Assembly: GCA_950097015.1 (NCBI GenBank)
Contig: CATNEN010000009.1
Span: forward strand, 992,001-1,056,000
Origin: Macrostomum hystrix
Lineage: Eukaryota > Animalia > Platyhelminthes
Length of the DNA stretch: 64,000 nucleotides
Direction: 5' to 3'
The position numbers were made by a program, and so were the translations under genes. Every line of letters begins with the position of its first letter. The stretch's first letter is position 1. The notes beneath the pieces are model-generated. The model was not told the origin of the DNA. It saw nothing but the letters and a program-made list of their open reading frames with translations, and ran no database searches. Positions 34,014-62,702 of this stretch are shown piece after piece.

Positions 34014-37000
34014 TCAGGGTTGCTTAGGGACCAGGTAAGTCCCGTCGTCCTGCTCCACAACCCGGTAGCCGTCTAGGAACCGGCGGTAAGTAACTGAAGT
34101 GGTGGTCGGCCTGCGAATCGAGATCATGACGTTCGGGTGCACCGGGTCAGCCGTGTACGCGTTCCACCTGCCACCGCCTGCTGACTGCGATTTGCCTCTG
34201 CCGATGACAGCAGAAAAGGCAGCACCGCCGGCGCACGGCTCCTTTTCAAACTCCTTCTCCTCCCCAGGTAAATTGCTGGCCGCAGCGATGTACTTGGACG
34301 GAATATTCAGGCACTCGGTCATTGTGTCCACCAAGTCGCGGAAGCTCGGTCGAGACTCCGGCTGAGGCAGCCAGCAGCTCAGCAGGATGTTGTAGAAGTC
34401 GATGCTGCAGATGTCGGGCTGGTTCAGTCGGATGCCCTTCTTCAGCAGTCCTGTGATGTCCTCGACCGATCGAATTCCGTACGGGTTGTAGGGCGACTCG
34501 CCGAACGTGCAGATCTCCCACAGAAGCACTCCGTAGCTCCACACATCCGACTTGTGGCTGAACAGTCCGGACTCGAAGCACTCCACGCCGAGCCACTTCA
34601 CTGGAAGGAGGCCCGCCGTCTGGACGAACTCGCCCTCCGACAGGTTCAGCAGGCGAGCCAGACCGAAGTCCGTGATGCGGACCTGATCCGGAGACTGAAG
34701 CAGCACGTTGCGAGCAGCCAGGTCGCGGTGGACAATGCCGAGAGACTCCAGGTACTCCATGCCCTCTGCCACCTGCAGGCCCCAACGCAGCATTCGCTCC
34801 GCTCCGATTTGGTTGTGGTGAGTTCGCAGGAACTCCAGCAGACAGCCTCGAGGCATCAGCGCCGTGATCAGCTGCGGCTCCTGGGTCAGGCACAGAGCCA
34901 CCAGCCGTATGCAGCACGGATGCTGCACTCTGGCCAGGACACTCGCCTCATTCAGCAGCTCCTGTCCCAGCTTCGGACTGTGACCGCGCAACACCTTGAT
35001 GGCCACAGGCAGCTCGCGCACTCCCTTGTTTGTGCTGGACCTCAGAATGCCCTTGTACACGGTGCCGAACGCGCCGCTGCCGATCTCCTTCTGCTTCACC
35101 ACATCGTCGTCGTTCACAATCAGCAGCTTCGCCATGTCGCTCGGATTGCTCGGATCCTTTAGGTACTCGTCCAGGTCGACCATCTCGTACTTTCGCATTC
35201 GCTTGCGGTAGTGCAGGTAGGCGAGCGGGAGCAGCAGCAGCAGCAGCAGAATCAGCAGGCCGACACCGATGCCGACAGCAAAGAGCCTCGCCGTCGCCAC
35301 AGAGTAGCAGAAGCCTCGAGAATCAGCAGCCATTTCACGGCTGCTGCAGGAGGCCACGCACTTGTCATCCTCCTTCAGGTTGCGGCATCGCTCGCACTCG
35401 GAAGCGCTCGGACCGCTGCAGCCGCCGTCGCACTCACTGTGGCACGGCAGACACGAGGAGCCTAGCTGATATCGGCCTGCATGCTTGCACGTGGCATGAC
35501 AGCGACCGTCCACCTCGAAGTTCCTGCAGGCCACGCACATGTCCGGTCCGGGTCCCCAGCACTCGTCTCTGCACTGAGGGTCGCAGGCAGCATTTCGGCA
35601 CACTTCGCTCGAGTTGTCGAAGCTGAGCTCTTTATCTTTCTCATTGGGCCAGTGCTCAGTTGAATTCTGCAGATTCTTGGTAAAATCGAATGGAAACCAG
35701 GGCAAGCAGAGGCCTCTTACGTTTCTCAATTTCAGGGCTGTAGTGTACCTAAGCGAAGCGAGGCCCAGGTGCGTGATTTTGCAGCTCTCAATAATGAGCT
35801 GACCTGAAAATTGTACCACATTCTTCAGAAAACGGAGGCTTCCAACGGATGAGGGAATTTTTTTAATCACAAAATTGTCCACCAGAACAACTCGAACTGA
35901 CTCGAGATTCCTCAGTGAGTCCAGCGACTCAAGCAGCTCTCCATTAATGCTGACGACCTGCTTAAACCTCAAGTCCGTTGGCGCCAGTGTGGAACAGTTG
36001 TTTAGGCTGTCGAGTGTCTGGTCAGAAAGCACTCTTTCAATGCCATCTTTGCATACCCGGCAGCTTTGACGCCCTCCAGCTACAGAGCAAGGAGTGCAGA
36101 CTCCATGTATAGGCATTTGACCTTCGGGACATTCGATTATGCAGTACTCGCGTCGAAAGTCCATCAGGAACTCTCTCGGGCACTTGTCGACGCAGACGTT
36201 ACCAGCCTGAAGCTGGGAGCCGTGCGACCGAGTGAGTCGGCCAACAGCTGCATCGTAGAAGGACTCATTGCGGCAGCTGTGCGAGCACCTTCCTCCCTGC
36301 AGTACGCTTTGACAGGAGTGGCACTCGCTAGGCTCAAGCGAGCGGCATCCCCCCAGGCAGCTGCTGTCGCAGCACTCCTCCTCGCCATCTGCCGTCCTAT
36401 AGCACGTGTTGGTGCGACAAACTCGCCTCTGGCACTTGGAGACGAACTGGCATTCGCTGCTGGACCAGCAGAGCCGCCGCCCATCCCTCAAGGGACAGAA
36501 GCTGCTGCACTCGGGTACACGATCGCATAGCCCGTCCAGGCTAGCCGGCTTGGAAAATGTGTCTGTGAGGTTGGTCAGGTAGGTGACTTCGTCTATCAGG
36601 CGCTGTTCGCCCGACTGGAAAGTTTCATTCCAGCTGATACGCCTGCTGAGCTGGCAGTACAGGTCCAGGTTCATGTGGCTCGTGAGCAGTACTCCGATTC
36701 CCTGGATGGAGCTGAGCTTCGGCATAAGTATTTGCATCTGCTGGAAGCAGTGACGGATTTCCAAGGCATAGAGAGGGTGAGCGGGCGTCTGTGCGTTCAC
36801 GAAGCCCCTGATGGCTCTGAGATTTTCCAGCTCAAGTCGCTTGAGGCCCAGACTAGTGATGACGACCCTGCCAGAGACCTCTAGAATGGAGTCAAGGAAG
36901 CTGGTATTCATCGCGTTGATCGCGCCGTCGATAATTTGTCCATTGCTGTCTGCGCCTAGGAACTGGATATGCAAGTCGCCGTACACAAACTGACAGCCGT

Positions 37001-37166
37001 CCACCTTGCGAGTTAAGATCTCGTGCAGATAGCTCACGTTCCTGTGCTGCTCATAATTGCCGTTTGTGATTCTCAGGCTCTTGCAGATCCTGGGCTCCGA
37101 GCAGCCGGGCTGGAACATCGCGCAGAAGAGCAGCTGCAGCAGCAAGGCAGCAGCAGCAAAGCTCAT
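34014..37166 (-). CDS. EGFR: EGFR/ErbB-family receptor tyrosine kinase, paralog A (1050 aa, intronless CDS)
   Basis: Signal peptide, L1 (GCQFVYGDLHI, LENLRAIRG), furin-like Cys-rich domain, L2, domain IV (CWGPGPDMCVAC), TM, and a kinase with GSGAFGTVYKG, VAIK, HRDLAARN, DFGLARLL and SDVWSYGV. Confidence 0.97.
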   Translation of the reverse strand: MSFAAAALLLQLLFCAMFQPGCSEPRICKSLRITNGNYEQHRNVSYLHEILTRKVDGCQFVYGDLHIQFLGADSNGQIIDGAINAMNTSFLDSILEVSGRVVITSLGLKRLELENLRAIRGFVNAQTPAHPLYALEIRHCFQQMQILMPKLSSIQGIGVLLTSHMNLDLYCQLSRRISWNETFQSGEQRLIDEVTYLTNLTDTFSKPASLDGLCDRVPECSSFCPLRDGRRLCWSSSECQFVSKCQRRVCRTNTCYRTADGEEECCDSSCLGGCRSLEPSECHSCQSVLQGGRCSHSCRNESFYDAAVGRLTRSHGSQLQAGNVCVDKCPREFLMDFRREYCIIECPEGQMPIHGVCTPCSVAGGRQSCRVCKDGIERVLSDQTLDSLNNCSTLAPTDLRFKQVVSINGELLESLDSLRNLESVRVVLVDNFVIKKIPSSVGSLRFLKNVVQFSGQLIIESCKITHLGLASLRYTTALKLRNVRGLCLPWFPFDFTKNLQNSTEHWPNEKDKELSFDNSSEVCRNAACDPQCRDECWGPGPDMCVACRNFEVDGRCHATCKHAGRYQLGSSCLPCHSECDGGCSGPSASECERCRNLKEDDKCVASCSSREMAADSRGFCYSVATARLFAVGIGVGLLILLLLLLLPLAYLHYRKRMRKYEMVDLDEYLKDPSNPSDMAKLLIVNDDDVVKQKEIGSGAFGTVYKGILRSSTNKGVRELPVAIKVLRGHSPKLGQELLNEASVLARVQHPCCIRLVALCLTQEPQLITALMPRGCLLEFLRTHHNQIGAERMLRWGLQVAEGMEYLESLGIVHRDLAARNVLLQSPDQVRITDFGLARLLNLSEGEFVQTAGLLPVKWLGVECFESGLFSHKSDVWSYGVLLWEICTFGESPYNPYGIRSVEDITGLLKKGIRLNQPDICSIDFYNILLSCWLPQPESRPSFRDLVDTMTECLNIPSKYIAAASNLPGEEKEFEKEPCAGGAAFSAVIGRGKSQSAGGGRWNAYTADPVHPNVMISIRRPTTTSVTYRRFLDGYRVVEQDDGTYLVPKQP

Positions 37167-37910: not shown

Positions 37911-38020
37911 CTGCTATTTGAGTCGCTCTGCGGTGCTCAGAAATGTGAGCAGTCCTCGCACTGGCCAAGTGGCGAGAAGCGCTTTATACTCTGCTTCCAC
38001 TCGGCCTCAGCCCGTCCAAT
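37911..38020 (-). promoter_or_regulatory. CCAAT + TATA promoter and non-coding first exon of EGFR-A
   Basis: On the minus strand: GATTGG (38016-38021), TATAAA (37988-37983) and donor CAG|GTGAGT at 37911/37910. Acceptor CAG at 37183-37181 or 37175-37173, just before the ATG. Confidence 0.6.
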
Positions 38021-38537: not shown

Positions 38538-39726
38538 CATTACCATTGCTATCGCCAGTACCATTATTACCATTACCATCGCCAGTACCATTATTACCAT
38601 TGCCATCGCCAGTACCATTATTACCATTACCATCGCCAGTACCATTATTACCACTGCCATCGCCAGTACCATTATTACCATTACCATCGCCATTACCATT
38701 ATTACCATTGCCATCGCCATTACCATTATTACCATTACCATCGCCAGTACCATTATTACCATTGCCATCGCCAGTACCATTATTACCATTACCATCGCCA
38801 TTACCATTATTACCATTACCATCGCCAGTACCATTATTACCATTACCATCGCCAGTACCATTATTACCATTGCCATCGCCAGTACCATTATTACCATTAC
38901 CATCGCCAGTACCATTATTACCATTACCATCGCCATTACCATTATTACCATTGCCATCGCCAGTACCATTATTACCATTACCATCGCCAGTACCATTATT
39001 ACCATTACCATCGCCAGTACCATTATTACCATTGCCATCGCCATTACCATTATTACCATTGCCATCGCCAGTACCATTATTACCATTACCATCGCCAGTA
39101 CCATTATTACCATTACCATCGCCAGTACCATTATTACCATTGCCATCGCCAGTACCATTATTACCATTACCATCGCCAGTACCATTATTACCATTGCCAT
39201 CGCCAGTACCATTATTACCATTACCATCGCCAGTACCATTATTACCATTGCCATCGCCATTACCATTATTACCATTGCCATCGCCAGTACCATTATTACC
39301 ATTGCCATCGCCATTACCATTATTACCATTGCCATCGCCAGTACCATTATTACCATTACCATCGCCATTACCATTATTACCATTGCCATCGCCATTACCA
39401 TTATTACCATTGCCATCGCCAGTACCATTATTACCATTACCATCGCCATTACCATTATTACCATTACCATCGCCATTACCATTATTACCATTGCCATCGC
39501 CATTACCATTATTACCATTGCCATCGCCAGTACCATTATTACCATTACCATCGCCATTACCATTATTACCATTACCATCGCCAGTACCATTATTACCATT
39601 GCCATCGCCATTACCATTATTACCATTGCCATCGCCAGTACCATTATTACCATTGCCATCGCCAGTACCATTATTACCATTACCATCGCCAGTACCATTA
39701 TTACCATTGCCATCGCCATTACCATT
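38538..39726. repeat. 27-bp minisatellite, ~44 copies
   Basis: Unit CCAGTACCATTATTACCATTGCCATCG, built from ACCATT-like subunits. Confidence 0.97.
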
Positions 39727-40003: not shown

Positions 40004-40651
40004 AGTGATTGGCTAGTCATCCCTAACAGTGATTGGCTACTCATCTCTAGCAGTGATTGGCTACTCATCCCTAACAGTGATTGGCTAGTCATCCCTAACA
40101 GTGATTGGCTAGTCATCCCTAACAGTGATTGGCTACTCATCCCTAACAGTGATTGGCTACTCATCCCTAAACTTATCCCTAACAGTGATTGGCTAGTCAT
40201 CCCTAACAGTGATTGGCTAGTCATCCCTAACAGTGATTGGCTAGTCATCCCTAACAGTGATTGGCTACTCATCCCTAACAGTGATTGGCTACTCATCCCT
40301 AACAGTGATTGGCTACTCATCCCTAACAGTGATTGGCTAGTCATCCCTAACAGTGATTGGCTACTCATCCCTAACAGTGATTGGCTACTCATCCCTAAAC
40401 TTATCCCTAACAGTGATTGGCTAGTCATCCCTAACAGTGATTGGCTAGTCATCCCTAACAGTGATTGGCTACTCATCCCTAACAGTGATTGGCTACTCAT
40501 CCCTAACAGTGATTGGCTACTCATCCCTAACAGTGATTGGCTACTCATCCCTAACAGTGATTGGCTACTCATCCCTAACAGTGATTGGCTACTCATCCCT
40601 AACAGTGATTGGCTACTCATCCCTAAACTTATCCCTAACAGTGGTTGGCTA
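40004..40651. repeat. 24-bp minisatellite, ~27 copies
   Basis: Unit CAGTGATTGGCTA(C/G)TCATCCCTAA. Confidence 0.97.
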
Positions 40652-40699
40652 GCACTTTAGCACTAGGCTTTGAGGGGGCAATAGATTTCATGAGCTGTC

Positions 40700-41300: not shown

Positions 41301-41565
41301 GCCATGCAGCACTCTTGTAGCACTTTTTATACTATTTCTACGCAGTTTTACTCGGTTTCCTCTGATTTGCGCAGCTGATCCGTGTCTTCGTTGCTTTTTG
41401 ATTGAATATGGCATAGAAGGCCATTTAGATTTTTGCCCTCATTTCTGTACCAGAATCTTAGCTCTCCCCTTCTGACAGCCTCCTGATCCTCATCTGTTCC
41501 ACTGTCTTCCCCTTCCTGATCCCGTTCTGCCACTGCCTTCCCCTTCCTGATCCATCAGCTGCTTA

Positions 41566-43512
41566 ATCTACCAGCTCCCTGATCTGCCAGCTCCCTGATC
41601 TACCAGCTCCCTGATCTGCCAGCTCCCTGATCTGCCAGCTCCCAGATCTGCCAGCTCCCTGATCTACCAGCTCCTTGATGTACCAGCTCCCTGATCTAGC
41701 AGCTCCCTGATCTACCAGCTCCCTGATCTACCAGCTCCCTGATCTACCAGCTCCCTGATCTGCCAGCTCCCTGATCTACCAGCTCCCTGATCTAGCAGCT
41801 CCCTGATCTACCAGCTCCCTGATCTACCAGCTCCCTGATCTACCAGCTCCTTGATGTACCAGCTCCCTGATCTGCCAGCTCCCTGATCTACCAGCTCCCT
41901 GATCTGCCAGCTCCCTGATCTAGCAGCTCCCTGATCTACCAGCTCCCTGATCTACCAGCTCCCTGATCTACCAGCTCCCTGATCTGCCAGCTCTCTGATC
42001 TGCCAGCTCTCTGATCTGCCAGCTCCCAGATCTGCCAGCTCCCTGATCTACCAGCTCCCTGATCTGCCAGCTCCCTGATCTACCAGCTCCCTGATCTAGC
42101 AGCTTCCTGACCTACCAGCTCCCTGATCTACCAGCTCCCTGATCTACCAGCTCCCTGATCTGCCAGCTCCCTGATCTACCAGCTCCCTGATCTAGCAGCT
42201 CCCTGATCTACCAGCTCCCTGATCTACCAGCTACCTGATCTACCAGCTCCCTGATCTACCAGCTCCCTGATCTACCAGCTCCCTGATCTACCAGCTCCCT
42301 GATCTGCCAGCTCTCTGATCTGCCAGCTCTCTGATCTACCAGCTCCCAGATCTGCCAGCTCCCTGATCTACCAGCTCCCTGATCTGCCAGCTCCCTGATC
42401 TACCAGCTCCCTGATCTAGCAGCTTCCTGACCTACCAGCTCCCTGATCTACCAGCTCCCTGATCTACCAGCTCCCTGATCTGCCAGCTCCCTGATCTACC
42501 AGCTCCCTGATCTAGCAGCTCCCTGGTCTACCAGCTCCCTGATCTAGCAGCTCCCTGATCTACCAGCTCCCTGATCTACCAGCTCCCTGATCTACCAGCT
42601 CCCTGATCTACCAGCTCCCTGATCTGCCAGCTCCCTGATCTACCAGCTCCCTGATCTAGCAGCTCCCTGGTCTACCAGCTCCCTGATCTAGCAGCTCCCT
42701 GATCTACCAGCTCCCTGATCTACCAGCTCCCTGATCTACCAGCTCCCAGATCTGCCAGCTCCCTGATCTACCAGCTCCCTGATCTGCCAGCTCCCTGATC
42801 TACCAGCTCCCTGATCTAGCAGCTTCCTGACCTACCAGCTCCCTGATCTACCAGCTCCCTGATCTACCAGCTCCCTGATCTGCCAGCTCCCTGATCTGCC
42901 AGCTCCCTGATCTACCAGCTCCCTGATCTAGCAGCTTCCTGACCTACCAGCTCCCTGATCTACCAGCTCCCTGATCTACCAGCTCCCTGATCTACCAGCT
43001 CCCTGATCTACCAGCTCCCTGATCTACCAGCTCCCTGATCTGCCAGCTCTCTGATCTGCCAGCTCTCTGATCTACCAGCTCCCAGATCTGCCAGCTCCCT
43101 GATCTACCAGCTCCCTGATCTGCCAGCTCCCTGATCTACCAGCTCCCTGATCTAGCAGCTTCCTGACCTACCAGCTCCCTGATCTACCAGCTCCCTGATC
43201 TACCAGCTCCCTGATCTGCCAGCTCCCTGATCTACCAGCTCCCTGATCTGCCAGCTCCCTGATCTACCAGCTCCCTGATCTAGCAGCTCCCTGGTCTACC
43301 AGCTCCCTGATCTACCAGCTCCCTGATCTACCAGCTCCCTGATCTACCAGCTCCCTGATCTACCAGCTCCCTGATCTACCAGCTCCCTGATCTACCAGCT
43401 ACCTGATCTACCAGCTGCCTAATCTAATCCAATCTAATCTAATCCAATCTAATCTAATCCAATCTAATCTAATCCAATCTAATCTAATCCAATCTAATCT
43501 AATCTAATCCAA
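41566..43512. repeat. 16-bp minisatellite (~116 copies) followed by an (AATCT/AATCC)n tract
   Basis: Unit ATCT(A/G)CCAGCTCCCTG to ~43420, then pentamer repeats to 43512. Confidence 0.97.
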
Positions 43513-44971: not shown

Positions 44972-47900
44972 ATGACAACCAGAATGCTCAAGCTGCTGAT
45001 TCTGCAGCTCCTCACAGCGCTTGCATCTTGCAGACAGCCACTGGGCTCCGACAGTCGCCGTTGCACCACCATCATCATCAGTGACGGTCAGTACCAGAGC
45101 CACCGCAACGTCACGCGGCTGAATGAGGAGCTCAAAGCTAAAGTGGCCGGGTGCCAGTACGTGATCGGCGACCTTTTCCTCGAGAAAATCGGGGTCGATC
45201 AAGATTCATATGAACCCATCGACGAAGTCCGCAAACTTCGGACGGACTTTCTCGACTCCATCGTCGAGATCAGCGGACGGTTGATCATCAAGTATGTCAA
45301 CCTGGAGCGCATCACCTTGCGCAACCTGCGCATCATTCGCGGCTACAACATCCAGAATGAGGTCGATTTCTTCGCAATGGAAATCTGGCAGTTGAGATAC
45401 CCAACCCGACTGGAGCTGCCCAAGCTGAGCGCCATCCTGCAAGGCAGCGTCAAAACTGTCGGAACGTTGCATGCGGACCTGTACTGCCATTTGACTCGCA
45501 GCGTGAACTGGACGAGTCTATTCAACATATCGTCACAAATATTCCATGGAAACTCGTACGAAATGGCTTTCGGCAAACAGCTGATAAGAGTCAATGAGTT
45601 CGATGAGATCGAGAGGGCCTGCAGTTCAGTACTGAATTGCAGTAGCAGCTGCCACACTGAAAGGTCTGGTCGACAGCTCTGCTGGTCCGACGGGCAAGAC
45701 GGCTGCCAGAGCTTCAACGGATGTCTCAAGCGACCGTGCCGAAATTGCTACCGACATCCCCAAACACGCACCGAGGAGTGTTGCAACACCGACTGTCTCG
45801 GCGGCTGCTCCGACCGACCTGATGGCTGTTTCTCGTGCAGTGAAGTCATTCTGAATGGTGTCTGCAAGGGAAAGTGTCCACGCAAGTCGGACCCGAACCC
45901 TGGCACGAACAGGGTCGAAGGTTCCGACTCTAGCATGAAGCAGGTGGGCCACATCTGCGTTAACAAGTGCGAGATGCCGTTTCTCACGAGCTCCAACGAA
46001 GAGCACTGCTTGAGCGAGTGTCCTCAGACTGAGTATCCGTACCAAGGTGTCTGCAAAAAATGCAACCAGTCGTCTTGCAAGTCATGCACGATCGGAAATC
46101 GAATCATGAGTGATTATCAGGCACAGATGCTCAAGAATAGAAACTGCACGACCTGGCGAACGGACGAATCCTTGGATGTCAACGCCGACAAGCTGAGCAG
46201 CAAGGCCAGTTTAATGACTTTAGAGCAACTGAAAAATTTCCATGGAATTCTCATGATTAAAAGAACGGATCGTCTAGTTCCGAATATAAGATTTCTTAGA
46301 AACTTGCAGCTTGTCTCGGGTGACCTTCAGGTGCTGATGATGAAAGCAACATACATTGGCCTCGCCAAGCTCCGATTCGCAAAACGCCTGTTGCTGAAGG
46401 AAATCAGCGGTCTGTGCAAGGCTTGGTACCCCAGCAACAGAATTCATGAAATCATGGAGGTAACCAAGGAGTTTCAGATAACCGTCATAAACATCAGCTT
46501 CGACATCTCGAGCGAAGTGTGCCGAAATGCTGCCTGCGACCCTCAGTGCAGAGACGAGTGCTGGGGACCCGGACCGGACATGTGCGTGGCCTGCAGGAAC
46601 TTCGAGGTGGACGGTCGCTGTCATGCCACGTGCAAGCATGCAGGCCGATATCAGCTAGGCTCCTCGTGTCTGCCGTGCCACAGTGAGTGCGACGGCGGCT
46701 GCAGCGGTCCGAGCGCTTCCGAGTGCGAGCGATGCCGAAACCTGAAGGAGGACGACAAGTGCGTGGCCTCCTGCAGTCGAGAAATGCGCGCGAGCTCAAA
46801 GGGCGTCTGCTACTCGGTGGCGACAGCGAGGCTCTTTGCTGTCGGCATCGGTGTCGGCCTGCTGATTCTGCTGCTGCTGCTGCTGCTGCCGCTCGCCTAC
46901 CTGCACTACCGCAAGCGAATGCGAAAGTACGAGATGGTCGACCTGGACGAGTACCTGAAGGATCCGAGCAATCCGAGCGACATGGCGAAGCTGCTGATTG
47001 TGAACGACGACGATGTGGTGAAGCAGAAGGAGATCGGCAGCGGCGCGTTCGGCACCGTGTACAAGGGCATTCTGAGGTCCAGCACAAACAAGGGAGTGCG
47101 CGAGCTGCCTGTGGCCATCAAGGTGTTGCGCGGTCACAGTCCGAAGCTGGGACAGGAGCTGCTGAATGAGGCGAGTGTCCTGGCCAGAGTGCAGCATCCG
47201 TGCTGCATCCGGCTGGTGGCTCTGTGCCTGACCCAGGAGCCGCAGCTGATCACGGCGCTGATGCCTCGAGGCTGTCTGCTGGAGTTCCTGCGAACTCACC
47301 ACAACCAAATCGGAGCGGAGCGAATGCTGCGTTGGGGCCTGCAGGTGGCAGAGGGCATGGAGTACCTGGAGTCTCTCGGCATTGTCCACCGCGACCTGGC
47401 TGCTCGAAACGTGCTGCTTCAGTCTCCGGATCAGGTCCGCATCACGGACTTCGGTCTGGCTCGCCTGCTGAACCTGTCGGAGGGCGAGTTCGTCCAGACT
47501 GCGGGCCTCCTGCCAGTGAAGTGGCTCGGCGTGGAGTGCTTCGAGTCCGGACTGTTTAGCCACAAGTCGGATGTGTGGAGCTACGGAGTGCTTCTGTGGG
47601 AGATCTGCACCTTCGGCGAGTCGCCCTACAACCCGTACGGAATTCGGTCGGTCGAGGACATCACAGGACTGCTGAAGAAGGGCATCCGACTGAACCAGCC
47701 CGACATCTGCAGCATCGACTTCTACAACATCCTGCTGAGCTGCTGGCTGCCTCAGCCGGAGTCTCGACCGAGCTTCCGCGACTTGGTGGACACAATGACC
47801 GAGTGCCTGAATATTCCGTCCAAGTACATTGCCCAGGGCTACAGCATCGCTGATCCGGAGATGGGCACCGATGATGCCTTCGGCGATGTCAACGAGATGT

Positions 47901-48226
47901 CCCTGTCGTCGCTGGCGCAAAAGAGCGGTGGCGACCGCAGGTTCGTTTGCAGTCACGACAAGCACGGCAAGGAGCTGAACAAATACATTTCGTATCCCAG
48001 CCGCAGCTATTCGAAGAAGCATCAGCACTCTCCTGAGCGTCGGAGTTCCAGCAAGGCCAGCGAAAGCTCCAAGCTGCTGTGCCGTCGAGTCGGCGTTCAG
48101 TCCGAGCCGGACGACTATCTGACTCCAACATCGCAGAGCGGCGTTAATGGAAGCAGCGAAGGCGCTGATGCAGACAACGGAGCGTCGAGGGACTTGGATG
48201 ACTACCTGACACCGAAGAAGGTCTGA
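44972..48226 (+). CDS. EGFR: EGFR/ErbB-family receptor tyrosine kinase, paralog B (1084 aa, intronless CDS)
   Basis: Same domain order and kinase motifs as A. A CCTTCAG acceptor lies 13 nt before the ATG. The tail has two DDYLTP motifs. Confidence 0.97.
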   Translation: MTTRMLKLLILQLLTALASCRQPLGSDSRRCTTIIISDGQYQSHRNVTRLNEELKAKVAGCQYVIGDLFLEKIGVDQDSYEPIDEVRKLRTDFLDSIVEISGRLIIKYVNLERITLRNLRIIRGYNIQNEVDFFAMEIWQLRYPTRLELPKLSAILQGSVKTVGTLHADLYCHLTRSVNWTSLFNISSQIFHGNSYEMAFGKQLIRVNEFDEIERACSSVLNCSSSCHTERSGRQLCWSDGQDGCQSFNGCLKRPCRNCYRHPQTRTEECCNTDCLGGCSDRPDGCFSCSEVILNGVCKGKCPRKSDPNPGTNRVEGSDSSMKQVGHICVNKCEMPFLTSSNEEHCLSECPQTEYPYQGVCKKCNQSSCKSCTIGNRIMSDYQAQMLKNRNCTTWRTDESLDVNADKLSSKASLMTLEQLKNFHGILMIKRTDRLVPNIRFLRNLQLVSGDLQVLMMKATYIGLAKLRFAKRLLLKEISGLCKAWYPSNRIHEIMEVTKEFQITVINISFDISSEVCRNAACDPQCRDECWGPGPDMCVACRNFEVDGRCHATCKHAGRYQLGSSCLPCHSECDGGCSGPSASECERCRNLKEDDKCVASCSREMRASSKGVCYSVATARLFAVGIGVGLLILLLLLLLPLAYLHYRKRMRKYEMVDLDEYLKDPSNPSDMAKLLIVNDDDVVKQKEIGSGAFGTVYKGILRSSTNKGVRELPVAIKVLRGHSPKLGQELLNEASVLARVQHPCCIRLVALCLTQEPQLITALMPRGCLLEFLRTHHNQIGAERMLRWGLQVAEGMEYLESLGIVHRDLAARNVLLQSPDQVRITDFGLARLLNLSEGEFVQTAGLLPVKWLGVECFESGLFSHKSDVWSYGVLLWEICTFGESPYNPYGIRSVEDITGLLKKGIRLNQPDICSIDFYNILLSCWLPQPESRPSFRDLVDTMTECLNIPSKYIAQGYSIADPEMGTDDAFGDVNEMSLSSLAQKSGGDRRFVCSHDKHGKELNKYISYPSRSYSKKHQHSPERRSSSKASESSKLLCRRVGVQSEPDDYLTPTSQSGVNGSSEGADADNGASRDLDDYLTPKKV

Positions 48227-54562: not shown

Positions 54563-56823
54563 TCACTTCAGGTAGATGAGGAAGCGGTCAGCGAACTTGG
54601 CGCCGCCAGATTGCAGCGCGCTGGCCTGACTCTCCGTGTACACCAGCGCTGGCGCCTTTCCGCGCCAGCCGTTGTAGCCCCAGGCGCAGGGGTCGCGCGC
54701 GTCTGACACGGTCCAGAAGGCCCTGTCGCCTCCACAGCCGGCGTATGAGAACAGGATGAAGAAGCCGCGCTTCCAGTGCGTGTCGCCAGCGATTGAGAAT
54801 TTCTGGAACCTTGGATCGGCCACGCTTGGGTTGTGGTAGAACCCGTCAGAGTGCTTCAGTTCGCGGACTGCACGGTAGGGAAAGCTGGACACCACGCGGC
54901 TCTGGTGGAACCAGTTCTGCTTGTCCAGTCCCTGCCTTCTGATGGAGACGTCGAACACGACCTGGGCGACTTTGCGGTTGGCGACTCGCATCTCCGCCAC
55001 CAGGTACTGCCGGCCACTGGCGATCACAGCCTGGCTGAGGTTGTCGATCAAGTCCGATCGGTAGACTTCAGGTAGAGATCCTGTGCTTGCCTTGGAGAAT
55101 GCGGGCTGCCTGTTCAGGAAGGTGGCCACGGCTTGATGACCGGAGCCCGCCTTCACAGTGAACAGAATAATCTTGTCGTTCTCTGCGGGCGGGTACATGT
55201 ATTTGACGCTTTTGCACTTATAAAATATATTCGAGTCGATTAAGTAAGTACAGCACTAGCAGAGTTTTGCATGGATCTGCATGTGAAGTTGCATTCGTTG
55301 AATCCACAAAACATGATTCGATTGAAAGGCCAAAAAAATCATCGAAAAGTTCGTCCTAAAAAGCAACATTTGCTGAATCGAGAATTGAGAATACTCCCAA
55401 AAGCATGATGATCTTGGCAGAATAGATTTCGAAATGAGTAGAGTTTTTGAACCCTCACACCGGCCATCTCACCGAACGTGAAGGCTCCAGGTAAGGCCTT
55501 TCTGGACACAGCAAACGGCGGGAGCACAGGCGTCTCAAGGCGCAGGTAGACGAGGAAGCGATCAGCAAAGGCTGTGTTGCCCTCGTGGTAGGGCTTGCTG
55601 TCCACTTTGCTGTATACCAGAAGAGGTGACTTTCCCTTCCAGCCGCGGTTGCTGTAGGTGCAGGGGTCCCTCACATCGGAGACGTAGAACAGCCCAGTGT
55701 CCTTCTCGCAGCCTCCGTAGTGACGGTTGATTTGAAATCGGCGCAAAAGGCTCGCACCACGGTTATCTCCGTCGATGCCAAAGATGTTGTAGTTGCTGCG
55801 GCCGAACCAGAAAGGCTTTGTGGACAGCAGCCTCTTGGGGCTGAACCAGCTGTTCTTGTCCAAGCCCTCCGGCTCGGCGCTGAACACCGCCTGCGAAACT
55901 GTGCGACCAGCTTCGTCGCGCATCTCAGCAACGATCTGCCATCGGCCGCCTTTGGCCACCCGTGCGAGCTGGTCGAGGAGGCCTGACCGGTAGAGGGTGG
56001 GCAGGGAGCCATCCATCGGCACTGCGTAGGTTTGCTCGCTCTGAAAAGTTGGGTAGACCTGGTGACCGCTGTTGGCCTTCACAGTGTAGAGCAGCAGCTT
56101 GTCGGACTCTGCAGAGGCGTGATTTCGAGTTCTTAGGAAACAATGCGGTATCTGAGAACACAGTAAAATGGTGATGAACTTCATGTGAAAGCCGAACTTA
56201 CCGAACCAGAAGGCGTTCCTGAAGGGTCGCTTGACAGCATTGGCCACCGGAAGGCCGACGCGGCTCAGTTCAAAGCTCTGGCCGTTAGCCTTGCCGTGGA
56301 AGGTGAATCTCAGAGAGCCTAGCAGCTCAGCATGGTCCGGACCGGTGAAGCGCAAGGCGCGCTTGAGTCGGAGACAGGCGGCGCGGCTCCGGCAGCGGAA
56401 GGTGACTACGGGATGGCGACCTCGGTTCCAGCGTCCTGAAACCGTCACCGAGGGGCAGCTGCTGGCACAAGCACCTGTAATGGACTTGCGAATAGTCACC
56501 TTGAAGCTTTGCACCTGCAACAGCTCCCACTTGCGGGTGCCGTCGGCTGGCAGCTTCACTCCGGACTCAACGACAAGGGGCACCGTCATGAAGAACCCCT
56601 GGCCCAGCGGGTCCGGCCGGATGTCCACGCCCCTGCGCGGCAACCGCATGGCGATGTAGGGCTCCACGACGCGAACTTCGTTGTTAGCGAAGCAGCGCAG
56701 CCGAGCGCCACGGAACATCAGCGCGGGAGCCTCCTCCCAACTGCCAGGCTGCTGCTCCGACAGGCCACCCAGAGCGGACGGTGTCGTCAGCAGCAGAATG
56801 CTCAGGCTGAAGAAATAGAACAT
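54563..56823 (-). CDS. Secreted protein (~625 aa) with an unknown N-terminal domain and two tandem copies of an uncharacterised ~200-aa domain (3 exons)
   Basis: Exons 56823-56202, 56108-55473 and 55182-54563, with donors TTCG|GTAAGT and TTCG|GTGAGA and acceptors CAG|AG (both introns phase 1). The product starts with a signal peptide. Exons 2 and 3 are paralogous: DKxxLxTVKAxSGHQ, YRSxLxD, GLDKxxWF, xxIxGD, YxGCxxD, VSDxRDPC, GWxGKxP, FADRFLxYL. The two ORF-track entries are parts of one gene. Confidence 0.8.
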
Positions 56824-57438: not shown

Positions 57439-57814
57439 TGATTGTGCATTCTACTGACATGTAAGAAGTAGGGTGTCACAAACATTGATTGTGCATTCCA
57501 CTGACATGTAAGAAGTAGGGTGTCACAAACATTGATTGTGCATTCTACTGACATGTAAGAAGTAGGGTGTCACAAACATTGATTGTGCATTCCACTGACA
57601 TGTAAGAAGTAGGGTGTCACAAACATTGATTGTGCATTCTACTGACATGTAAGAAGTAGGGTGTCACAAACATTGATTGTGCATTCTACTGACATGTAAG
57701 AAGTAGGGTGTCACAAACATTGATTGTGCATTCTACTGACATGTAAGAAGTAGGGTGTCACAAACATTGATTGTGCATTCTACTGACATGTAAGAAGTAG
57801 GGTGTCACAAACAT
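57439..57814. repeat. 47-bp minisatellite, 8 copies
   Basis: Unit TGATTGTGCATTCTACTGACATGTAAGAAGTAGGGTGTCACAAACAT. Confidence 0.97.
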
Positions 57815-58400
57815 TTTTGGTATTTGTGAATCCACCAAAAAATGTAAAAAAGTAAGAAGCAGCCAGGGTGGCCGGAAGTAGAGTTAGAGAGGCCAGATGC
57901 TGTGAAGACTGCCATGCGCAGGCTCAGTAGATGGCGAGTGAAAAAAGGCCATCGAAAGACTTCCTGTCACGCCAGCAGTTGTTCTTGTTATTAGCATTAC
58001 GTGGGGTGCAAAAATAAAAGCATTTGAGGCTCAGATCTGAACAGCTGACCCGGCAGAGTCCAAAGGGTGATGGCCTGCGGCGTCTGTGCTGAACTGCCTG
58101 ACATCAGCAGGCCTGATGTGCATCTGAAACATTTTTGGCGCTTGCCTCACGGCCTGCGGTTCTGTCTTGCGTCATCATCCGCTGATCTGCTGCTTTCGAC
58201 TTCTAGACAGTCGGATAAATAATTCCACTTTGGCTTCCAACAGGCCACTTACTGTATATTTTTATACTTTATCCATGGACTGGGTGGGACGCCACACCCG
58301 CCCTCCAATACCCTGAAGTTACTGGTCCTACCCATTTAATAGCTGCGTGAACTGAACCAACAAAGAGCTAATTGTCTTGCTAAAGAACAAAAATGATTTT

Positions 58401-59192: not shown

Positions 59193-59407
59193 TATATTTA
59201 AGATCGCCCTCGGACTAGAAGAGCTTGGCGGAAAACGCTCTGGCCTTTCAAACTGTCACAGAGCCGTTGCCCAACTTCACTTCCAAATTCGGGCCTCGCC
59301 GTGAGTGCGCAACTGTGGGCTGATTAGATAAAGCCGTGAATTCACTTTCAAAAGTCTGCGGAAAATCGCAGAGCAGAAACTGCTATCTCCACAATTCTCG
59401 CTGACAG
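59193..59407 (+). promoter_or_regulatory. TATA-like box, non-coding exon and 5'UTR intron of EGFR-C
   Basis: TATATTTAA at 59193, donor GCC|GTGAGT at 59301 and acceptor CTGACAG at 59407, 31 nt before the ATG. CCAAT and GC-box-like motifs at ~58965-58985. Confidence 0.55.
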
Positions 59408-59438
59408 GTGCAGGAAAGAGGAAAACTGCGCAATTTCA

Positions 59439-62400
59439 ATGCGTTCGACAACTACTACTATGCTTGAGCTGCTGCTTCTGCAACTGCTCGCAAGCCTCGG
59501 CTCCAGCAGCCAGCCACTGGGCTCCAACAGTCGCCTGTGCAAGACCATCACCATCACGAACGGACTGTACCAGACCCACCGGAACATCAGCCGACTGCAC
59601 GCAGAACTCAGCGCCACGGTGGCCGGATGCCAGTATTTGAATGGCGATCTCAATATCTTGAATGTCGGCGCTGATCCGACATCCGAGCAGCCTCTCGACG
59701 ACGCTATCCGTGGACTTGAGACAGACTTTCTCGACTCCATCGTTGAGATCAGCGGGCGGTTGGTCATTAAACGTGTCAACTTGAAGCGACTCACCTTGCG
59801 CAACCTGCGGTCTATACGCGGCTACAATCACGAGAATGTGAGTCCATTCTACTCAATGGAAGTCTGGCAGACGAGATACCCCACCCAACTGGAGCTGCCC
59901 AAGCTGAGCGCCATCCTGCAAGGCAGTGTCAACATGATTGGCACAGTGCATGCGGACCTGTACTGCCATTTGACTCGCAGCGTACACTGGCTGAGTCTGT
60001 TTCAAAACCCAGCGCTGCAAAAATTCATCGATGATGCCTCCCTCATGGCTCTCGGCGACCAACTAATAAGAGTCGATAAGTTCGATGAGATCGAGAGGGC
60101 CTGCAGTTCAGTACTGAATTGCAGTAGCAGCTGCCACACTGAAAGGTCTGGTCGACAGCTCTGCTGGTCCGACGGGCAAGACGGCTGCCAGAGCTTCAAC
60201 GGATGTCTCGAGCGACCGTGCCTAAATTGCTACCGACATCCCCAAACACGCACCGAGGAGTGTTGCAACACCGACTGTCTCGGCGGCTGCTCCGACCGGC
60301 CTGATGGCTGTTTCTCCTGTCGCGATGTCATTCTGCATGGGGTTTGCAAGGGCGCGTGTCCACTCAAGTCGGACCCGAACCCTGGCACAAATAGGGTCGA
60401 CAGTTTCAACTCCAGCATGAAGCGGGTGGGCCACATCTGTGTGAACAAGTGCGAGATGCCGTTTGTGACGAGCTCCAACGAAGAGCACTGCTTGAGCGAG
60501 TGTCCTCAGACTGAGTATCCGTACCAAGGTGTCTGCAAAAAATGCACCCTGTCGTCTTGCAAGTCATGCACGATCACAAAGCTAATCCTGAATGACGATG
60601 AGGCACAGAAGCTCAAGGACAGAAACTGCACGACCTGGCGAACGGACGCCTCCTTGGAAGTCAGCGGCGACAAGCTGAGCAGCAAGGCCAGTCTGATGAC
60701 ACTGGAATCACTACAAATATTTTATGGTCGCTTGTTTATCAAGAGAAGCGAAGGCCTGGTACAAAATCTAGGAATTCTCAAGAATTTAAAGTTCGTGTCG
60801 GACAACTTTGGAATTACGTTTTTAAAGACAACCTACATTGGTCTCGCCAAGCTCAGATACGCAAAGTCTCTCTTGTTTATGAGGGTGAGCGGTCTGTGCA
60901 AGGCTTGGTACCCCAGCAACAGAATTCATGAAATCATGGAGGTCACCAAGGAGTTTCCGATATCCATCAGGGACATCAGCTTCGACAACTCGAGCGAAGT
61001 GTGCCGAAATGCTGCCTGCGACCCTCAGTGCAGAGACGAGTGCTGGGGACCCGGACCGGACATGTGCGTGGCCTGCAGGAACTTCGAGGTGGACGGTCGC
61101 TGTCATGCCACGTGCAAGCATGCAGGCCGATATCAGCTAGGCTCCTCGTGTCTGCCGTGCCACAGTGAGTGCGACGGCGGCTGCAGCGGTCCGAGCGCTT
61201 CCGAGTGCGAGCGATGCCGAAACCTGAAGGAGGACGACAAGTGCGTGGCCTCCTGCAGTCGAGAAATGCGCGCGAGCTCAAAGGGCGTCTGCTACTCGGT
61301 GGCGACAGCGAGGCTCTTTGCTGTCGGCATCGGTGTCGGCCTGCTGATTCTGCTGCTGCTGCTGCTGCTGCCGCTCGCCTACCTGCACTACCGCAAGCGA
61401 ATGCGAAAGTACGAGATGGTCGACCTGGACGAGTACCTGAAGGATCCGAGCAATCCGAGCGACATGGCGAAGCTGCTGATTGTGAACGACGACGATGTGG
61501 TGAAGCAGAAGGAGATCGGCAGCGGCGCGTTCGGCACCGTGTACAAGGGCATTCTGAGGTCCAGCACAAACAAGGGTGTGCGCGAGCTGCCTGTGGCCAT
61601 CAAGGTGTTGCGCGGTCACAGTCCGAAGCTGGGACAGGAGCTGCTGAATGAGGCGAGTGTCCTGGCCAGAGTGCAGCATCCGTGCTGCATCCGGCTGGTG
61701 GCTCTGTGCCTGACCCAGGAGCCGCAGCTGATCACGGCGCTGATGCCTCGAGGCTGTCTGCTGGAGTTCCTGCGAACTCACCACAACCAAATCGGAGCGG
61801 AGCGAATGCTGCGTTGGGGCCTGCAGGTGGCAGAGGGCATGGAGTACCTGGAGTCTCTCGGCATTGTCCACCGCGACCTGGCTGCTCGAAACGTGCTGCT
61901 TCAGTCTCCGGATCAGGTCCGCATCACGGACTTCGGTCTGGCTCGCCTGCTGAACCTGTCGGAGGGCGAGTTCGTCCAGACTGCGGGCCTCCTGCCAGTG
62001 AAGTGGCTCGGCGTGGAGTGCTTCGAGTCCGGACTGTTTAGCCACAAGTCGGATGTGTGGAGCTACGGAGTGCTTCTGTGGGAGATCTGCACCTTCGGCG
62101 AGTCGCCCTACAACCCGTACGGAATTCGGTCGGTCGAGGACATCACAGGACTGCTGAAGAAGGGCATCCGACTGAACCAGCCCGACATCTGCAGCATCGA
62201 CTTCTACAACATCCTGCTGAGCTGCTGGCTGCCTCAGCCGGAGTCTCGACCGAGCTTCCGCGACTTGGTGGACACAATGACCGAGTGCCTGAATATTCCG
62301 TCCAAGTACATTGCCCAGGGCTACAGCATCGCTGATCCGGAGATGGGCACCGATGATGCCTTCGGCGATGTCAACGAGATGTCCCTGTCGTCGCTGGCGC

Positions 62401-62702
62401 AAAAGAGCGGTGGCGACCGCAGGTTCGTTTGCAGTCACGACAAGCACGGCAAGGAGCTGAATGCGTATATCTCAGACCCGACCAGCCGCTACGCACCGCA
62501 GCTGCGCCACCCTCCGGTGGGTCCAGTGAGTTCCAGCGACACCAGCGAGAGCTCCAAGCTGCTGTGCGGCCAGTTCAGTGTTCAGTCCGAGCCGGACGAC
62601 TATCTGACCCCGACATCGCCGAGCGGCGTAAATGGAAGCAGCGATGCAGCTGAAGGTTCAAACGGCGTCTTGGATGACTACCTGACGCCGAAGAAGGCTT
62701 GA
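59439..62702 (+). CDS. EGFR: EGFR/ErbB-family receptor tyrosine kinase, paralog C (1087 aa, intronless CDS)
   Basis: Same architecture as A and B. The domain IV-to-kinase protein sequence is essentially identical to B. Confidence 0.97.
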   Translation: MRSTTTTMLELLLLQLLASLGSSSQPLGSNSRLCKTITITNGLYQTHRNISRLHAELSATVAGCQYLNGDLNILNVGADPTSEQPLDDAIRGLETDFLDSIVEISGRLVIKRVNLKRLTLRNLRSIRGYNHENVSPFYSMEVWQTRYPTQLELPKLSAILQGSVNMIGTVHADLYCHLTRSVHWLSLFQNPALQKFIDDASLMALGDQLIRVDKFDEIERACSSVLNCSSSCHTERSGRQLCWSDGQDGCQSFNGCLERPCLNCYRHPQTRTEECCNTDCLGGCSDRPDGCFSCRDVILHGVCKGACPLKSDPNPGTNRVDSFNSSMKRVGHICVNKCEMPFVTSSNEEHCLSECPQTEYPYQGVCKKCTLSSCKSCTITKLILNDDEAQKLKDRNCTTWRTDASLEVSGDKLSSKASLMTLESLQIFYGRLFIKRSEGLVQNLGILKNLKFVSDNFGITFLKTTYIGLAKLRYAKSLLFMRVSGLCKAWYPSNRIHEIMEVTKEFPISIRDISFDNSSEVCRNAACDPQCRDECWGPGPDMCVACRNFEVDGRCHATCKHAGRYQLGSSCLPCHSECDGGCSGPSASECERCRNLKEDDKCVASCSREMRASSKGVCYSVATARLFAVGIGVGLLILLLLLLLPLAYLHYRKRMRKYEMVDLDEYLKDPSNPSDMAKLLIVNDDDVVKQKEIGSGAFGTVYKGILRSSTNKGVRELPVAIKVLRGHSPKLGQELLNEASVLARVQHPCCIRLVALCLTQEPQLITALMPRGCLLEFLRTHHNQIGAERMLRWGLQVAEGMEYLESLGIVHRDLAARNVLLQSPDQVRITDFGLARLLNLSEGEFVQTAGLLPVKWLGVECFESGLFSHKSDVWSYGVLLWEICTFGESPYNPYGIRSVEDITGLLKKGIRLNQPDICSIDFYNILLSCWLPQPESRPSFRDLVDTMTECLNIPSKYIAQGYSIADPEMGTDDAFGDVNEMSLSSLAQKSGGDRRFVCSHDKHGKELNAYISDPTSRYAPQLRHPPVGPVSSSDTSESSKLLCGQFSVQSEPDDYLTPTSPSGVNGSSDAAEGSNGVLDDYLTPKKA

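Follow-up and report, generated by a model that had tools for sequence, protein, structure and literature searches.

Three EGFR-type receptor tyrosine kinase genes of Macrostomum hystrix (A, B and C) have a 1.34 kb tract in common, which consists of domain IV, the transmembrane (TM) segment, the juxtamembrane region and the whole kinase. This tract is, with a probability of roughly 88%, kept near-identical by recurrent interlocus gene conversion, and the ectodomains and C-terminal tails around it are separate old lineages. The window is the whole stretch of 64,000 nucleotides that was analysed, and all positions refer to it.

Results

Genes and domain composition

The three genes and the variable parts of A are located as follows.

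34014..37166, minus strand: gene A, EGFR-type receptor tyrosine kinase, intronless, single uninterrupted ORF, 1050 aa
44972..48226, plus strand: gene B, EGFR-type receptor tyrosine kinase, intronless, single ORF, 1084 aa, head-to-head with A
59439..62702, plus strand: gene C, EGFR-type receptor tyrosine kinase, intronless, single ORF, 1087 aa, same orientation as B
35627..37166, minus strand: variable ectodomain of A (signal peptide, L1, CR1 and a diverged domain III), 36–38% aa identity to B/C
34014..34284, minus strand: C-terminal tail of A, A-type, with one YLVP motif and without similarity to the B/C tail

The Pfam domains Recep_L_domain, Furin-like, GF_recep_IV and PK_Tyr_Ser-Thr were all found in the EGFR order in A, B and C. 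PF01030 (E 4e-10 to 2e-15) and PF00757 (E 2e-17 to 2e-20) matched the N-terminal part above the curated cut-offs, and PF14843 and PF07714 (E ~6e-79) marked domain IV and the tyrosine kinase. The translations contain a single TM run, VGIGVGLLILLLLLLLPLAYL, followed by RKRMRK, and the kinase motifs GSGAFG, VAIK, HRDLAARN and DFG. The best matches among solved structures were EGFR, ErbB2 and ErbB4. When the domain III stretch was scanned alone, PF01030 reached a sub-threshold 21.0 bits in B (cut-off 21.8) and gave no match in A and C; the putative domain III aligns in position with domain III of the M. lignano EGFRs. By domain content and order the three genes are members of the EGFR/ErbB family, for which EGF-type ligand binding and dimer signalling are predicted. 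The sequence-only reading had described A upstream of the tract as only distantly similar to B and C and the C-tails as different, and the identities listed above agree with both descriptions.

The shared tract

The segments of the tract and its extension in B and C are the following.

35344..35626, minus strand: 5' arm of the A cassette (domain IV / CR2), 283 nt, 99% identical to B 46494–46776 and C 60976–61258 as inverted repeats
35294..35345, minus strand: A-private stalk patch between domain IV and the TM segment, which escaped homogenisation
34285..35315, minus strand: 3' arm of the A cassette (TM, juxtamembrane, whole kinase), 1031 nt, 99% identical to B 46802–47832 and C 61284–62314 as inverted repeats
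46494..47832, plus strand: B cassette (domain IV, stalk, TM, juxtamembrane, kinase)
60976..62314, plus strand: C cassette (domain IV, stalk, TM, juxtamembrane, kinase)
47833..47978, plus strand: proximal tail of B, identical to C only (0–1 differences in ~147 nt)
62315..62460, plus strand: proximal tail of C, identical to B only (0–1 differences in ~147 nt)

On the 5' side the homology switches at AGC TTC GAC (SFD; A 35626 = B 46494 = C 60976), and the three-way tract ends at KYIA (A 34285–34288 = B 47832 = C 62314). The identity between B and C runs on to about 47978/62460 (KELN) and is followed by abrupt divergence. The switch points first read by eye (A 35625, B ~46495, C ~60977) were right to within a few bases, and both tract ends had been placed properly. 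The estimate of about two differing sites between B and C proved exact for the three-way tract, with ATC/AAC at B 46505 and GGA/GGT at B 47093. A had been said to differ by a handful of synonymous SNPs and one stalk patch. Its 5' arm shows 2–3 differences from B/C in 279 nt and its 3' arm 11–12 in 1008 nt, all of the latter synonymous; outside the stalk patch there are 13 isolated changes, all of them synonymous and in third positions, with roughly half derived on each side. Therefore, A is a real, selected copy rather than an assembly error. The stalk patch (~50 nt) has 16 differences in 51 nt, one extra codon and a dS of ~1.5. Such a patch with saturated dS inside the A tract needs a special explanation: conversion may have run in two separate tracts, selection may have acted, or the patch may come from a third donor. 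No similarity was found among A, B and C in the flanks outside the coding sequences, so a recent segmental duplication of the three genes is not indicated.

Synonymous divergence and GC3

Synonymous divergence is erased solely inside the tract and is not uniform along the genes, as the sliding-window comparison proposed with the sequence-only reading revealed. Comparing A with B/C gives a dS of 0.037–0.041 (~0.04) in the tract and saturation in the ectodomain; comparing B with C gives 0.004 and 0.46, respectively. In sliding windows, the per-site synonymous difference (pS) between A and B/C was ~0.7 in the ectodomain and 0.00–0.11 in the tract off the stalk patch and the tract ends. At the ectodomain rate, synonymous differences as few as those in the tract would arise with a binomial probability of ~1e-117. 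A recent whole-gene duplication with uniform divergence, in which very fast positive selection made the ectodomains different, has practically no probability. The clustering of the intronless genes and the high ectodomain dN between A and B/C (0.68–0.75) would suit it, but the synonymous sites of the ectodomain are saturated against 0.04 in the tract, the flanks are unrelated, and M. lignano has orthologues of both the A-type and the B/C-type ectodomains and tails, which places the duplication before the species split.

Positive selection, in the sense of an overall ectodomain dN/dS above 1, was looked for between B and C and was not found: the ratio is 0.165/0.459 = 0.36, and the per-site nonsynonymous difference (pN) exceeds pS in isolated 40-codon windows only. 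The ratio applies to B and C, because dS between A and B/C is saturated. The GC3 value is 0.80 in the tract and 0.66–0.68 in the ectodomain (Fisher p 3e-6 to 4e-5). The rise is weaker in Ml1 of M. lignano (p 0.03), and the non-converting control Ml2 is nearly flat. The raised GC3 of the tract fits GC-biased conversion and is taken as supportive only.

Comparison with M. lignano

M. lignano, which supplied the decisive evidence, has an A-type orthologue, Ml3 (P0052/P0054), and a B/C-type orthologue, Ml1. The aa identity of the ectodomains is 61% for A and Ml3, 62–64% for B/C and Ml1, and 30–38% across types. The tails of A and Ml3 are 51–62% identical in aa, and the ectodomain and tail of C are nearest to Ml1. 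Inside the tract the relation is reversed. Kinase identity (aa) is 100% within each species and 94.8% between them, and that of domain IV-TM-juxtamembrane is 97–99% within and ~80% between. According to identity matrices and segment trees, paralogues are thus more alike than orthologues within the tract and less alike outside it. The ectodomain tree groups A with Ml3 (support 100/100) and B and C with Ml1 (((B,C),Ml1), 100/99), whereas in the tract tree the two species fall apart and the paralogues group by species. In AU tests, {A,B,C} was rejected for the ectodomain (p 2e-33) and {A,Ml3} for the tract (p 6e-57). Separate trees had been suggested as a check, and the conflict between them is plain. 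The boundaries in Ml1 and Ml3 equal those of A, B and C at the codon level, SFDN(S/T)SEVC and PSKYIA. The homogenisation of the same segment with the same boundaries in M. lignano indicates that the process is older than the species split and continued in each species. The Ml3 comparison was made at the protein level and synonymous erasure was computed for Macrostomum hystrix only; from the protein identities we infer that synonymous homogenisation probably took place within M. lignano as well.

Extreme purifying selection, including selection at the synonymous or RNA level, on an anciently shared cassette has a next to vanishing chance of accounting for the identity without sequence exchange. 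Kinase domains are highly constrained, and dN in the tract is indeed 0 within the species and 0.04 between species. On the other hand, the between-species dS of the tract, 0.43–0.69 against M. lignano, shows that synonymous sites are free to change. Dozens of substitutions are common to all paralogues of one species and missing from the other, which would require parallel change if no exchange occurred. Other M. lignano paralogues with similarly diverged ectodomains have no common cassette, and their kinases are only 71–79% identical and their domain IV-TM parts 48–54%. The between-species dS of the tract (0.43) is lower than that of the B/C-Ml1 ectodomains (1.4–1.7); the difference means that Ml1 is less than strictly orthologous to B or C, or that synonymous rates vary along the gene. 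Gene conversion rather than purifying selection or recent duplication had been put forward from the sequence, and the erasure of synonymous divergence in the tract alone, where paralogues cluster by species while the ectodomain and tail follow orthology, bears this out.

Raw-read contigs and copy number

Logan contigs are made from raw reads and are independent of the assembly; those of several samples (X1, X2, X4, X5) were used, with word depth as a rough proxy for copy number. In X1, X2 and X4 the contigs branch 30 nt inside both tract edges. On the A side a contig breaks at 34317, and loose ends that read the B/C tail lie at 34288. The kinase is one contig, ~7 times as deep as sequence unique to A or to B, and no other kinase variant of at least 90% identity was found among the raw-read contigs. 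The A ectodomain is single-copy (word depth 92 in X1), B-type ectodomain contigs are about single-copy (94–101), and C-type unique sequence with its 3' flank has about three copies (243–255). Branching of independent samples at the same boundaries, together with the ~7-fold cassette depth, indicates that the identity is no polishing artefact and that the family has more than three genes. The three paralogues counted first are indeed those of the window, but the count falls short of the whole family, a cluster of some eight intronless genes of EGFR/ErbB type.

An assembly or polishing artefact, by which truly distinct kinases became identical through collapse or through consensus polishing with reads of other copies, is therefore very improbable. 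A near-perfect repeat of 1.3 kb is a setting in which polishing can homogenise copies, and the raw-read contigs show the majority (B/C-type) cassette only. The A-type cassette variant was not retained in the Logan contigs, so the A-private SNPs are without independent read confirmation; loss is expected for a variant of about 1 in 8. Against the artefact stand the single kinase contig and its depth, the read-depth check having been proposed with the sequence-only reading, the branching of the contig graph exactly at the tract edges in several samples, the same architecture in the independent assembly and annotation of M. lignano, and the 13 private differences of A, which are all synonymous as errors would not be.

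The majority raw-read contig (depth 619) equals the C cassette except at 61577. In X2, X4 and X5 the majority cassette differs from the window at 34449, the one hint of conversion tracts segregating in populations, and other samples carry yet another replacement of 76 nt at the stalk patch (joint 35275->35343). These data also bear on a one-off origin, in which a single recent chimeric replacement per species, by a large conversion or a domain-swapping duplication, put a B/C-type cassette into an A-type gene with no continuing exchange. Strictly, one exchange between A and B/C (dS 0.04) suffices in this species, and some of the 7-fold cassette depth is due to the C locus having recently been duplicated together with its flank, not to conversion. 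Nevertheless, a one-off origin is improbable. It requires that separate events in the two species hit the same boundaries to the codon, and the ages are graded, with 0.04 for A-B/C, 0.004 for B-C and 0.46 for the B-C ectodomains. Moreover, B/C-derived synonymous changes are common to B, C and the majority contig, the 34449 variant sits on the majority cassette of other samples, and the interruption of the A tract suggests at least two tracts. That conversion is ongoing or recurrent, as the sequence-only reading had it, is supported by the shared boundaries in two species, by the gradation of dS up to 0.43 between species and by the sample-specific variant on the majority cassette.

Discussion

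In the proposed mechanism of recurrent conversion, a segment of 1.34 kb would be copied between paralogues by non-reciprocal homologous recombination, probably as non-crossover conversion, and inverted pairs (A with B/C) would take part in the exchange just as directly oriented ones do. Outside the tract lie L1, CR1 and domain III, which make up the ligand-binding part, and the C-terminal docking tails; these appear to have one-to-one orthologues in M. lignano. The boundaries may be held by lost nucleotide homology outside the tract, possibly with selection added. The identical TM, juxtamembrane and kinase modules could keep every homo- or heterodimer of members competent for signalling.

It is a tentative and rather doubtful idea that selection, and not merely homology loss, holds the boundaries. 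The genes would then form a combinatorial receptor set with diverse heads and tails on one domain IV-TM-juxtamembrane-kinase dimerisation module, and conversion would keep any two members compatible for a productive asymmetric kinase dimer. Sharp boundaries are also predicted by a purely mechanical homology requirement. In the vertebrate ErbB network the kinases are specialised and ErbB3 lost its activity; if the combinatorial set were real, the ErbB network would have evolved here in the opposite way. To our knowledge, the canonical ErbB1-4 did not evolve with a common kinase kept by such conversion.

Two parts of the earlier interpretation need correction. One kinase output overlooked the docking tails, which differ. 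The recognition ends were supposed to diversify, but the ectodomain types are old and stable, with orthologues in M. lignano (61–64% aa) and a B-C dN/dS of 0.36. As far as sequence comparison can tell, such stable orthologues argue against rapid turnover of a variable domain, and the likeness to the constant/variable design of immune and allorecognition receptors may be an analogy alone.

The mechanism is known from other receptor families, of which mammalian TLR1/TLR6 and the teleost protocadherins are the closest precedents. In the available text of Kruithof et al. 2007 (PMC2077338), the tandem receptor paralogues TLR1 and TLR6 resemble their orthologues more closely in the N-terminal ligand-binding part. 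To each other they are closer in a bounded C-terminal stretch of membrane-proximal ectodomain repeats, TM and intracellular signalling domain, and nearly the same region was converted independently in every species examined there. A/B/C and Ml1/Ml3 are likewise split into an N-terminal part that follows orthology and a bounded region homogenised by species. Unlike TLR1/TLR6, the flatworm genes encode EGFR-type tyrosine kinases rather than Toll-like receptors, number about eight instead of two and include an inverted partner (A); their tract also ends before the C-terminal tail, so that both protein ends are variable.

The clustered protocadherin variable exons of teleosts, as presented in the consulted portion of Yu et al. 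2007 (PMC1852091; Noonan et al. 2004 cited there), are many tandem paralogues with a divergent 5' part (distal ectodomain) and a 3' region of more than 99% nucleotide identity, in which GC3 is raised and homogenisation is lineage-specific. The EGFR copies resemble them in the divergent distal ectodomain, the near-identical downstream part and the raised GC3. In contrast, protocadherins are adhesion molecules that obtain a common cytoplasmic part also by splicing to shared constant exons, whereas each EGFR gene is a complete intronless unit with the catalytic domain in its homogenised part.

Tandem arrays of receptor kinases with conversion between neighbours are also documented in plants, in the accessible parts of the work on CRK/DUF26 (PMC6368629) and the Arabidopsis OAK cluster (PMC3136440). 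These are Ser/Thr receptor-like kinases unrelated to EGFR, and in the OAK cluster it is the ectodomain that the tract spans, with an end ~60 bp into the kinase, opposite in polarity to the EGFR tract (PMC3136440). A fixed boundary spanning species was not found described for either in those parts (PMC6368629, PMC3136440).

The flatworm EGFR expansions reported by Barberan et al. 2016 (PMC4914847) concern the same gene family as A, B and C. Eight EGFRs against two EGF-type ligands were found in M. lignano, with independent expansions in Macrostomorpha. Planarian EGFRs are treated there as intron-containing, unlike the intronless Macrostomum genes, and the term 'gene conversion' is absent from the paper. 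No prior report of such cassette conversion for EGF receptors was found in the literature.

The genes thus offer an animal receptor tyrosine kinase case of domain-restricted concerted evolution with codon-conserved boundaries across two species, an inverted pair included. A testable idea is that receptors with different heads and docking tails are held on one common dimerisation and catalytic module. Macrostomum is a transgenic-capable regeneration model in which this idea could be tested. Trees of flatworm EGFRs based on kinase domains will show false species-specific expansions, and orthology needs the ectodomain and tail. In the EGFR clusters of Macrostomum, near-perfect repeats of 1.3 kb can mislead assembly and read mapping, and kinase-directed RNAi or in situ probes may be misled by the cassette repeats in the same genus.

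Results

The three EGFR-type genes A, B and C of the window were each found as one uninterrupted ORF.

34014-37166, minus strand: gene A, 1050 aa
44972-48226, plus strand: gene B, 1084 aa
59439-62702, plus strand: gene C, 1087 aa

Gene A is head-to-head with B and inverted with respect to both B and C. The Pfam scan of each gene gave a receptor L domain, a furin-like region, growth-factor-receptor domain IV and a tyrosine kinase in the EGFR order. The translations begin with a signal-like N-terminus, contain a single transmembrane (TM) run and keep the kinase motifs GSGAFG, VAIK, HRDLAARN and DFG intact. The top solved-structure matches are EGFR, ErbB2 and ErbB4, and the nearest database proteins are the EGFRs of Macrostomum lignano with 53-70% identity. 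The window therefore belongs to a different species of Macrostomum. Domain III, the second L domain (B 45900-46500, C 60380-60980, A 35630-36030), is highly diverged and was detected by Pfam only marginally, in B alone. The tail of A has one YLVP-type motif and the tails of B and C have two DDYLTP motifs. Therefore, the outputs of A and B/C need not be identical.

In the self-comparison, A 34285-35626 corresponded to B 46494-47832 and C 60976-62314 with 97.8% identity in inverted orientation. This tract, or cassette, runs from domain IV to the kinase. The match of A with B/C falls into two arms of 283 nt and 1031 nt, each 99% identical. In the codon alignment, the 5' switch falls at AGC TTC GAC (SFD), the match of all three genes ends at KYIA, and the identity of B with C runs on to KELN (~47978/62460). 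The B-C alignment is confined to the coding sequences (88.9% overall), and no flank similarity between B and C was found in the self-comparison. Within the tract, 13 isolated changes separate A from B/C, each of them third-position and synonymous. A stalk patch of about 50 nt (35294-35345) also sets A apart; it differs at 16 of 51 nt and has an additional codon. The only differences between B and C are ATC/AAC and GGA/GGT, the two named in the sequence-only reading. In the TM-kinase part, dS is 0.037-0.041 between A and B/C, with dN of 0, and 0.004 between B and C. In contrast, ectodomain dS is saturated for A-B/C and 0.46 for B-C. At the ectodomain rate, a count of synonymous changes as low as that in the tract has a binomial probability of ~1e-117. 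The self-comparison, the codon alignment and the dS contrast all confirm the three-way near-identical tract. A simple recent duplication would leave uniform divergence along the genes and was rejected by the same contrast. GC3 differs between the tract (0.80) and the ectodomain (0.66-0.68; Fisher p 3e-6 to 4e-5), whereas it is nearly flat in Ml2, an unconverted M. lignano paralogue used as control. The difference fits GC-biased conversion without proving it. The B/C ectodomains are themselves mosaic. Their divergence peak lies in domain III (26-28 differences per 60 nt at C 60699-60818) and is adjoined by stretches with 0-1 differences (C 60099-60278).

Logan contigs derive from raw reads, independently of the assembly, and were aligned to A and to C. 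The source sample of the window is probably X1. In the read samples X1, X2 and X4, the contig of unique ectodomain sequence ends at 35597, 30 nt into the tract, and that of the unique tail at 34317, as a k=31 graph behaves where single-copy sequence meets a shared repeat. Loose contig ends at 35626 lead into three or more distinct ectodomain sequences; at 34288 they read a B/C-type tail. The kinase of X1 is a single contig with a word depth (k-mer depth) of 619 and with B/C alleles at the private sites of A; no other kinase variant of ≥90% identity was found among the aligned contigs. Word depth is 83-92 for A-unique sequence, 94-101 for B-type contigs (assigned by exact difference counts) and, in X1, 243-255 for the C-type unique ectodomain, tail and 3' flank (59300-62800). 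Comparing the kinase depth with these unique depths gives about seven cassettes of the B/C type in addition to A. The C locus itself appears to occur some three times, as a recent segmental duplication or as collapsed copies. The sequence-only reading had named assembly collapse as a possible source of the identity. The contig breaks at the tract edges, the single high-depth kinase contig and the depth ratios speak against such an artefact, and this explanation was rejected. The A-type cassette variant is absent from the Logan contigs, where the majority variant alone is retained, as expected for a minor bubble. The reads give no independent confirmation of the private SNPs of A, but their all being synonymous argues that they are real.

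Several further variants were observed in the contigs. An ectodomain variant that is neither B nor C has 13 differences over 59720-59905 at a depth of 210. The stalk patch of A falls within the tract. Its position is taken by a different replacement in other samples: one contig in X2 and X4 swaps 35275->35343 for 76 other letters. An additional, very abundant domain IV/stalk variant exists in these two samples. Its domain IV part (35275-35609 region; 9-10 differences) has word depths of 507 and 1424, far above those of the kinase contig (52 and 290). The CTG-rich, low-complexity stretch coding for the TM leucine run (35154-35267) draws contigs totalling a word depth of about 20,000 in X1; its depth is uninformative on the gene.

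The M. lignano protein Ml1 (P0001) matches B/C over ectodomain and tail, and Ml3 (P0052/P0054) matches A (ectodomain ~61%, tail 51-62%). However, the cassettes group by species. At the protein level, the kinases are 100% identical within species (A=B=C; Ml1=Ml3) and 94.8% identical between species, and the domain IV-TM-juxtamembrane segment is 97-99% identical within and ~80% between. In both species the switches fall at the same codons, namely SFDN(S/T)SEVC and PSKYIA with A or Q after it. Maximum-likelihood trees were built separately by segment, as had been suggested from the sequence alone, and their topologies conflict. The ectodomain tree gave (A,Ml3) with 100/100 and ((B,C),(Ml1,Ml1b)), where Ml1b is a further M. 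lignano sequence, with 100/99, whereas the tract tree gave (A,B,C) versus (Ml1,Ml1b,Ml3). For the ectodomain, the AU test rejected a grouping {A,B,C} (p 2e-33); for the tract, it rejected {A,Ml3} (p 6e-57). M. lignano paralogues without the shared cassette (Ml2, P0059 and P0060) served as calibration. At comparable ectodomain distance, their kinases are only 71-79% identical and their domain IV-TM segments 48-54%. Tract dS between species is 0.43-0.69. Therefore, synonymous sites of the tract are free to change, and pure purifying selection was rejected as the cause of the identity. The B/C-Ml1 ectodomain has a higher between-species dS than the tract; possibly Ml1 is not a strict orthologue of B or C, or rates vary along the gene.

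The M. lignano loci were also inspected. The nucleotide sequence of Ml3 was not found by exact look-up, and its cluster has UniRef-only members. No second EGFR was found within 10 kb of three Ml1 loci (L001, L003 and L004), and a 680-aa ORF downstream of Ml1 in L001 had no tblastn match to the EGFR queries. One of the three Ml1 copies (L004 10001-13269, NIVC01000386.1) is annotated as a 549-aa product, and tblastn resumes the remaining protein from 11602 in another frame. This copy is thus frameshifted within domain IV, as a pseudogene or by assembly error. P0058 (MetaClust, 3053 aa, Ml1 cluster) is a read-through translation ending in a complete Ml1-type protein, and its upstream part resembles, by eye only, an EGFR kinase and domain IV read in antisense. 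If this is true, two EGFR genes may also lie head-to-head in M. lignano, perhaps with a shortened ectodomain. Ml2 (L002 10001-17121), whose cassette is its own and unconverted, is split by four or more introns, while Ml1 and A/B/C lack introns. A retrocopy may be the origin of the subfamily that shares the cassette.

Discussion

The within-species cassette identity, the conflicting trees, the calibration paralogues and the between-species tract dS together identify the pattern as concerted evolution, with sequences exchanged in both lineages from before the species split onward. The proposal of gene conversion made from the sequence alone is strongly supported by the dS profile, the cross-species trees and the raw-read contigs. 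With Ml1 as outgroup, about half of the A-vs-B/C differences are derived on A and the other half on B/C, the latter common to B, C and the majority contig. On the tract clock, the last A-B/C homogenisation would date to about a tenth of the age of the species split (0.04 vs 0.43) and the last B-C homogenisation to about a hundredth. At 34449, the majority cassette of X2, X4 and X5 is unlike any of the three copies in the window, which hints that new variants spread over the copies within strains.

Unequal crossing-over cannot homogenise A because A is inverted with respect to B and C. A crossover in the tract between A and B would flip the interval and join ectodomains to other tails; the A-type ectodomain and tail are still paired in M. 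lignano, and this route was rejected. Therefore, the homogenisation is likely to proceed by non-crossover conversion. Conversion needs nucleotide homology. In principle, the fixed boundaries would need no selection, as A and B/C have no usable nucleotide homology beyond the tract. However, B and C are still ~90% identical just upstream, yet their perfect identity also begins at SFD. This misfits a simple homology-loss account and points to donors bearing other types of ectodomain or to selection.

In established EGFR structural biology, domain IV, TM, juxtamembrane and kinase are the parts that make receptor-receptor contacts from the membrane inward. An identical cassette would keep all homo- and heterodimers compatible, and we infer this to be the effect of homogenisation. 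The same argument is made for TLR1/TLR6 (PMC2077338). TLR1/TLR6 are also the closest precedent: in nine mammals, conversion has independently affected one and the same region, comprising the membrane-proximal, TM and signalling parts, and the N-terminal part groups by orthology. Variable exons of teleost protocadherins are likewise 5'-divergent and 3'-identical with raised GC3 (PMC1852091), and conversion is described for tandem plant receptor kinases (PMC6368629, PMC3136440). Nothing measured supports the likeness to immune or allorecognition families proposed in the sequence-only reading. The B-C ectodomain dN/dS is 0.36, and the types of ectodomain form stable lineages that have orthologues. 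Eight EGFRs and two EGF ligands were described in M. lignano by Barberan et al. 2016 (PMC4914847), where the term 'gene conversion' is absent. In the literature searched, no paper combined gene conversion and concerted evolution with receptor tyrosine kinases and the kinase domain, and among the titles listed for Macrostomum together with gene conversion, EGFR is the subject of none.

Long minisatellite arrays crowd the intergenic DNA around the EGFR genes (29395-33028, 38539-39726, 40004-40652, 41546-43426, 43986-44548, 57439-57815 and 63365-64000), with periods of 55, 27, 24/48, 16, 30, 47 and 30 nt and up to 118 copies. Several yield spurious long ORFs on both strands. In the Pfam scan, no match was obtained for the minus-strand ORFs between B and C (55339-56823, 494 aa; 54563-55198, 211 aa) or for the ORF at 52430-52777, and the ORF at 63220-63972 inside the 30-nt minisatellite gave sub-threshold repeat matches only. 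A second regional homogenisation was found at 11104-11367 and 13417-13680, which are 97% identical over 264 nt, while the remainder of this paralogue pair (11538-12276 vs 14072-14816) is ~70% identical. A third paralogue of the pair lies near 16994-18255.
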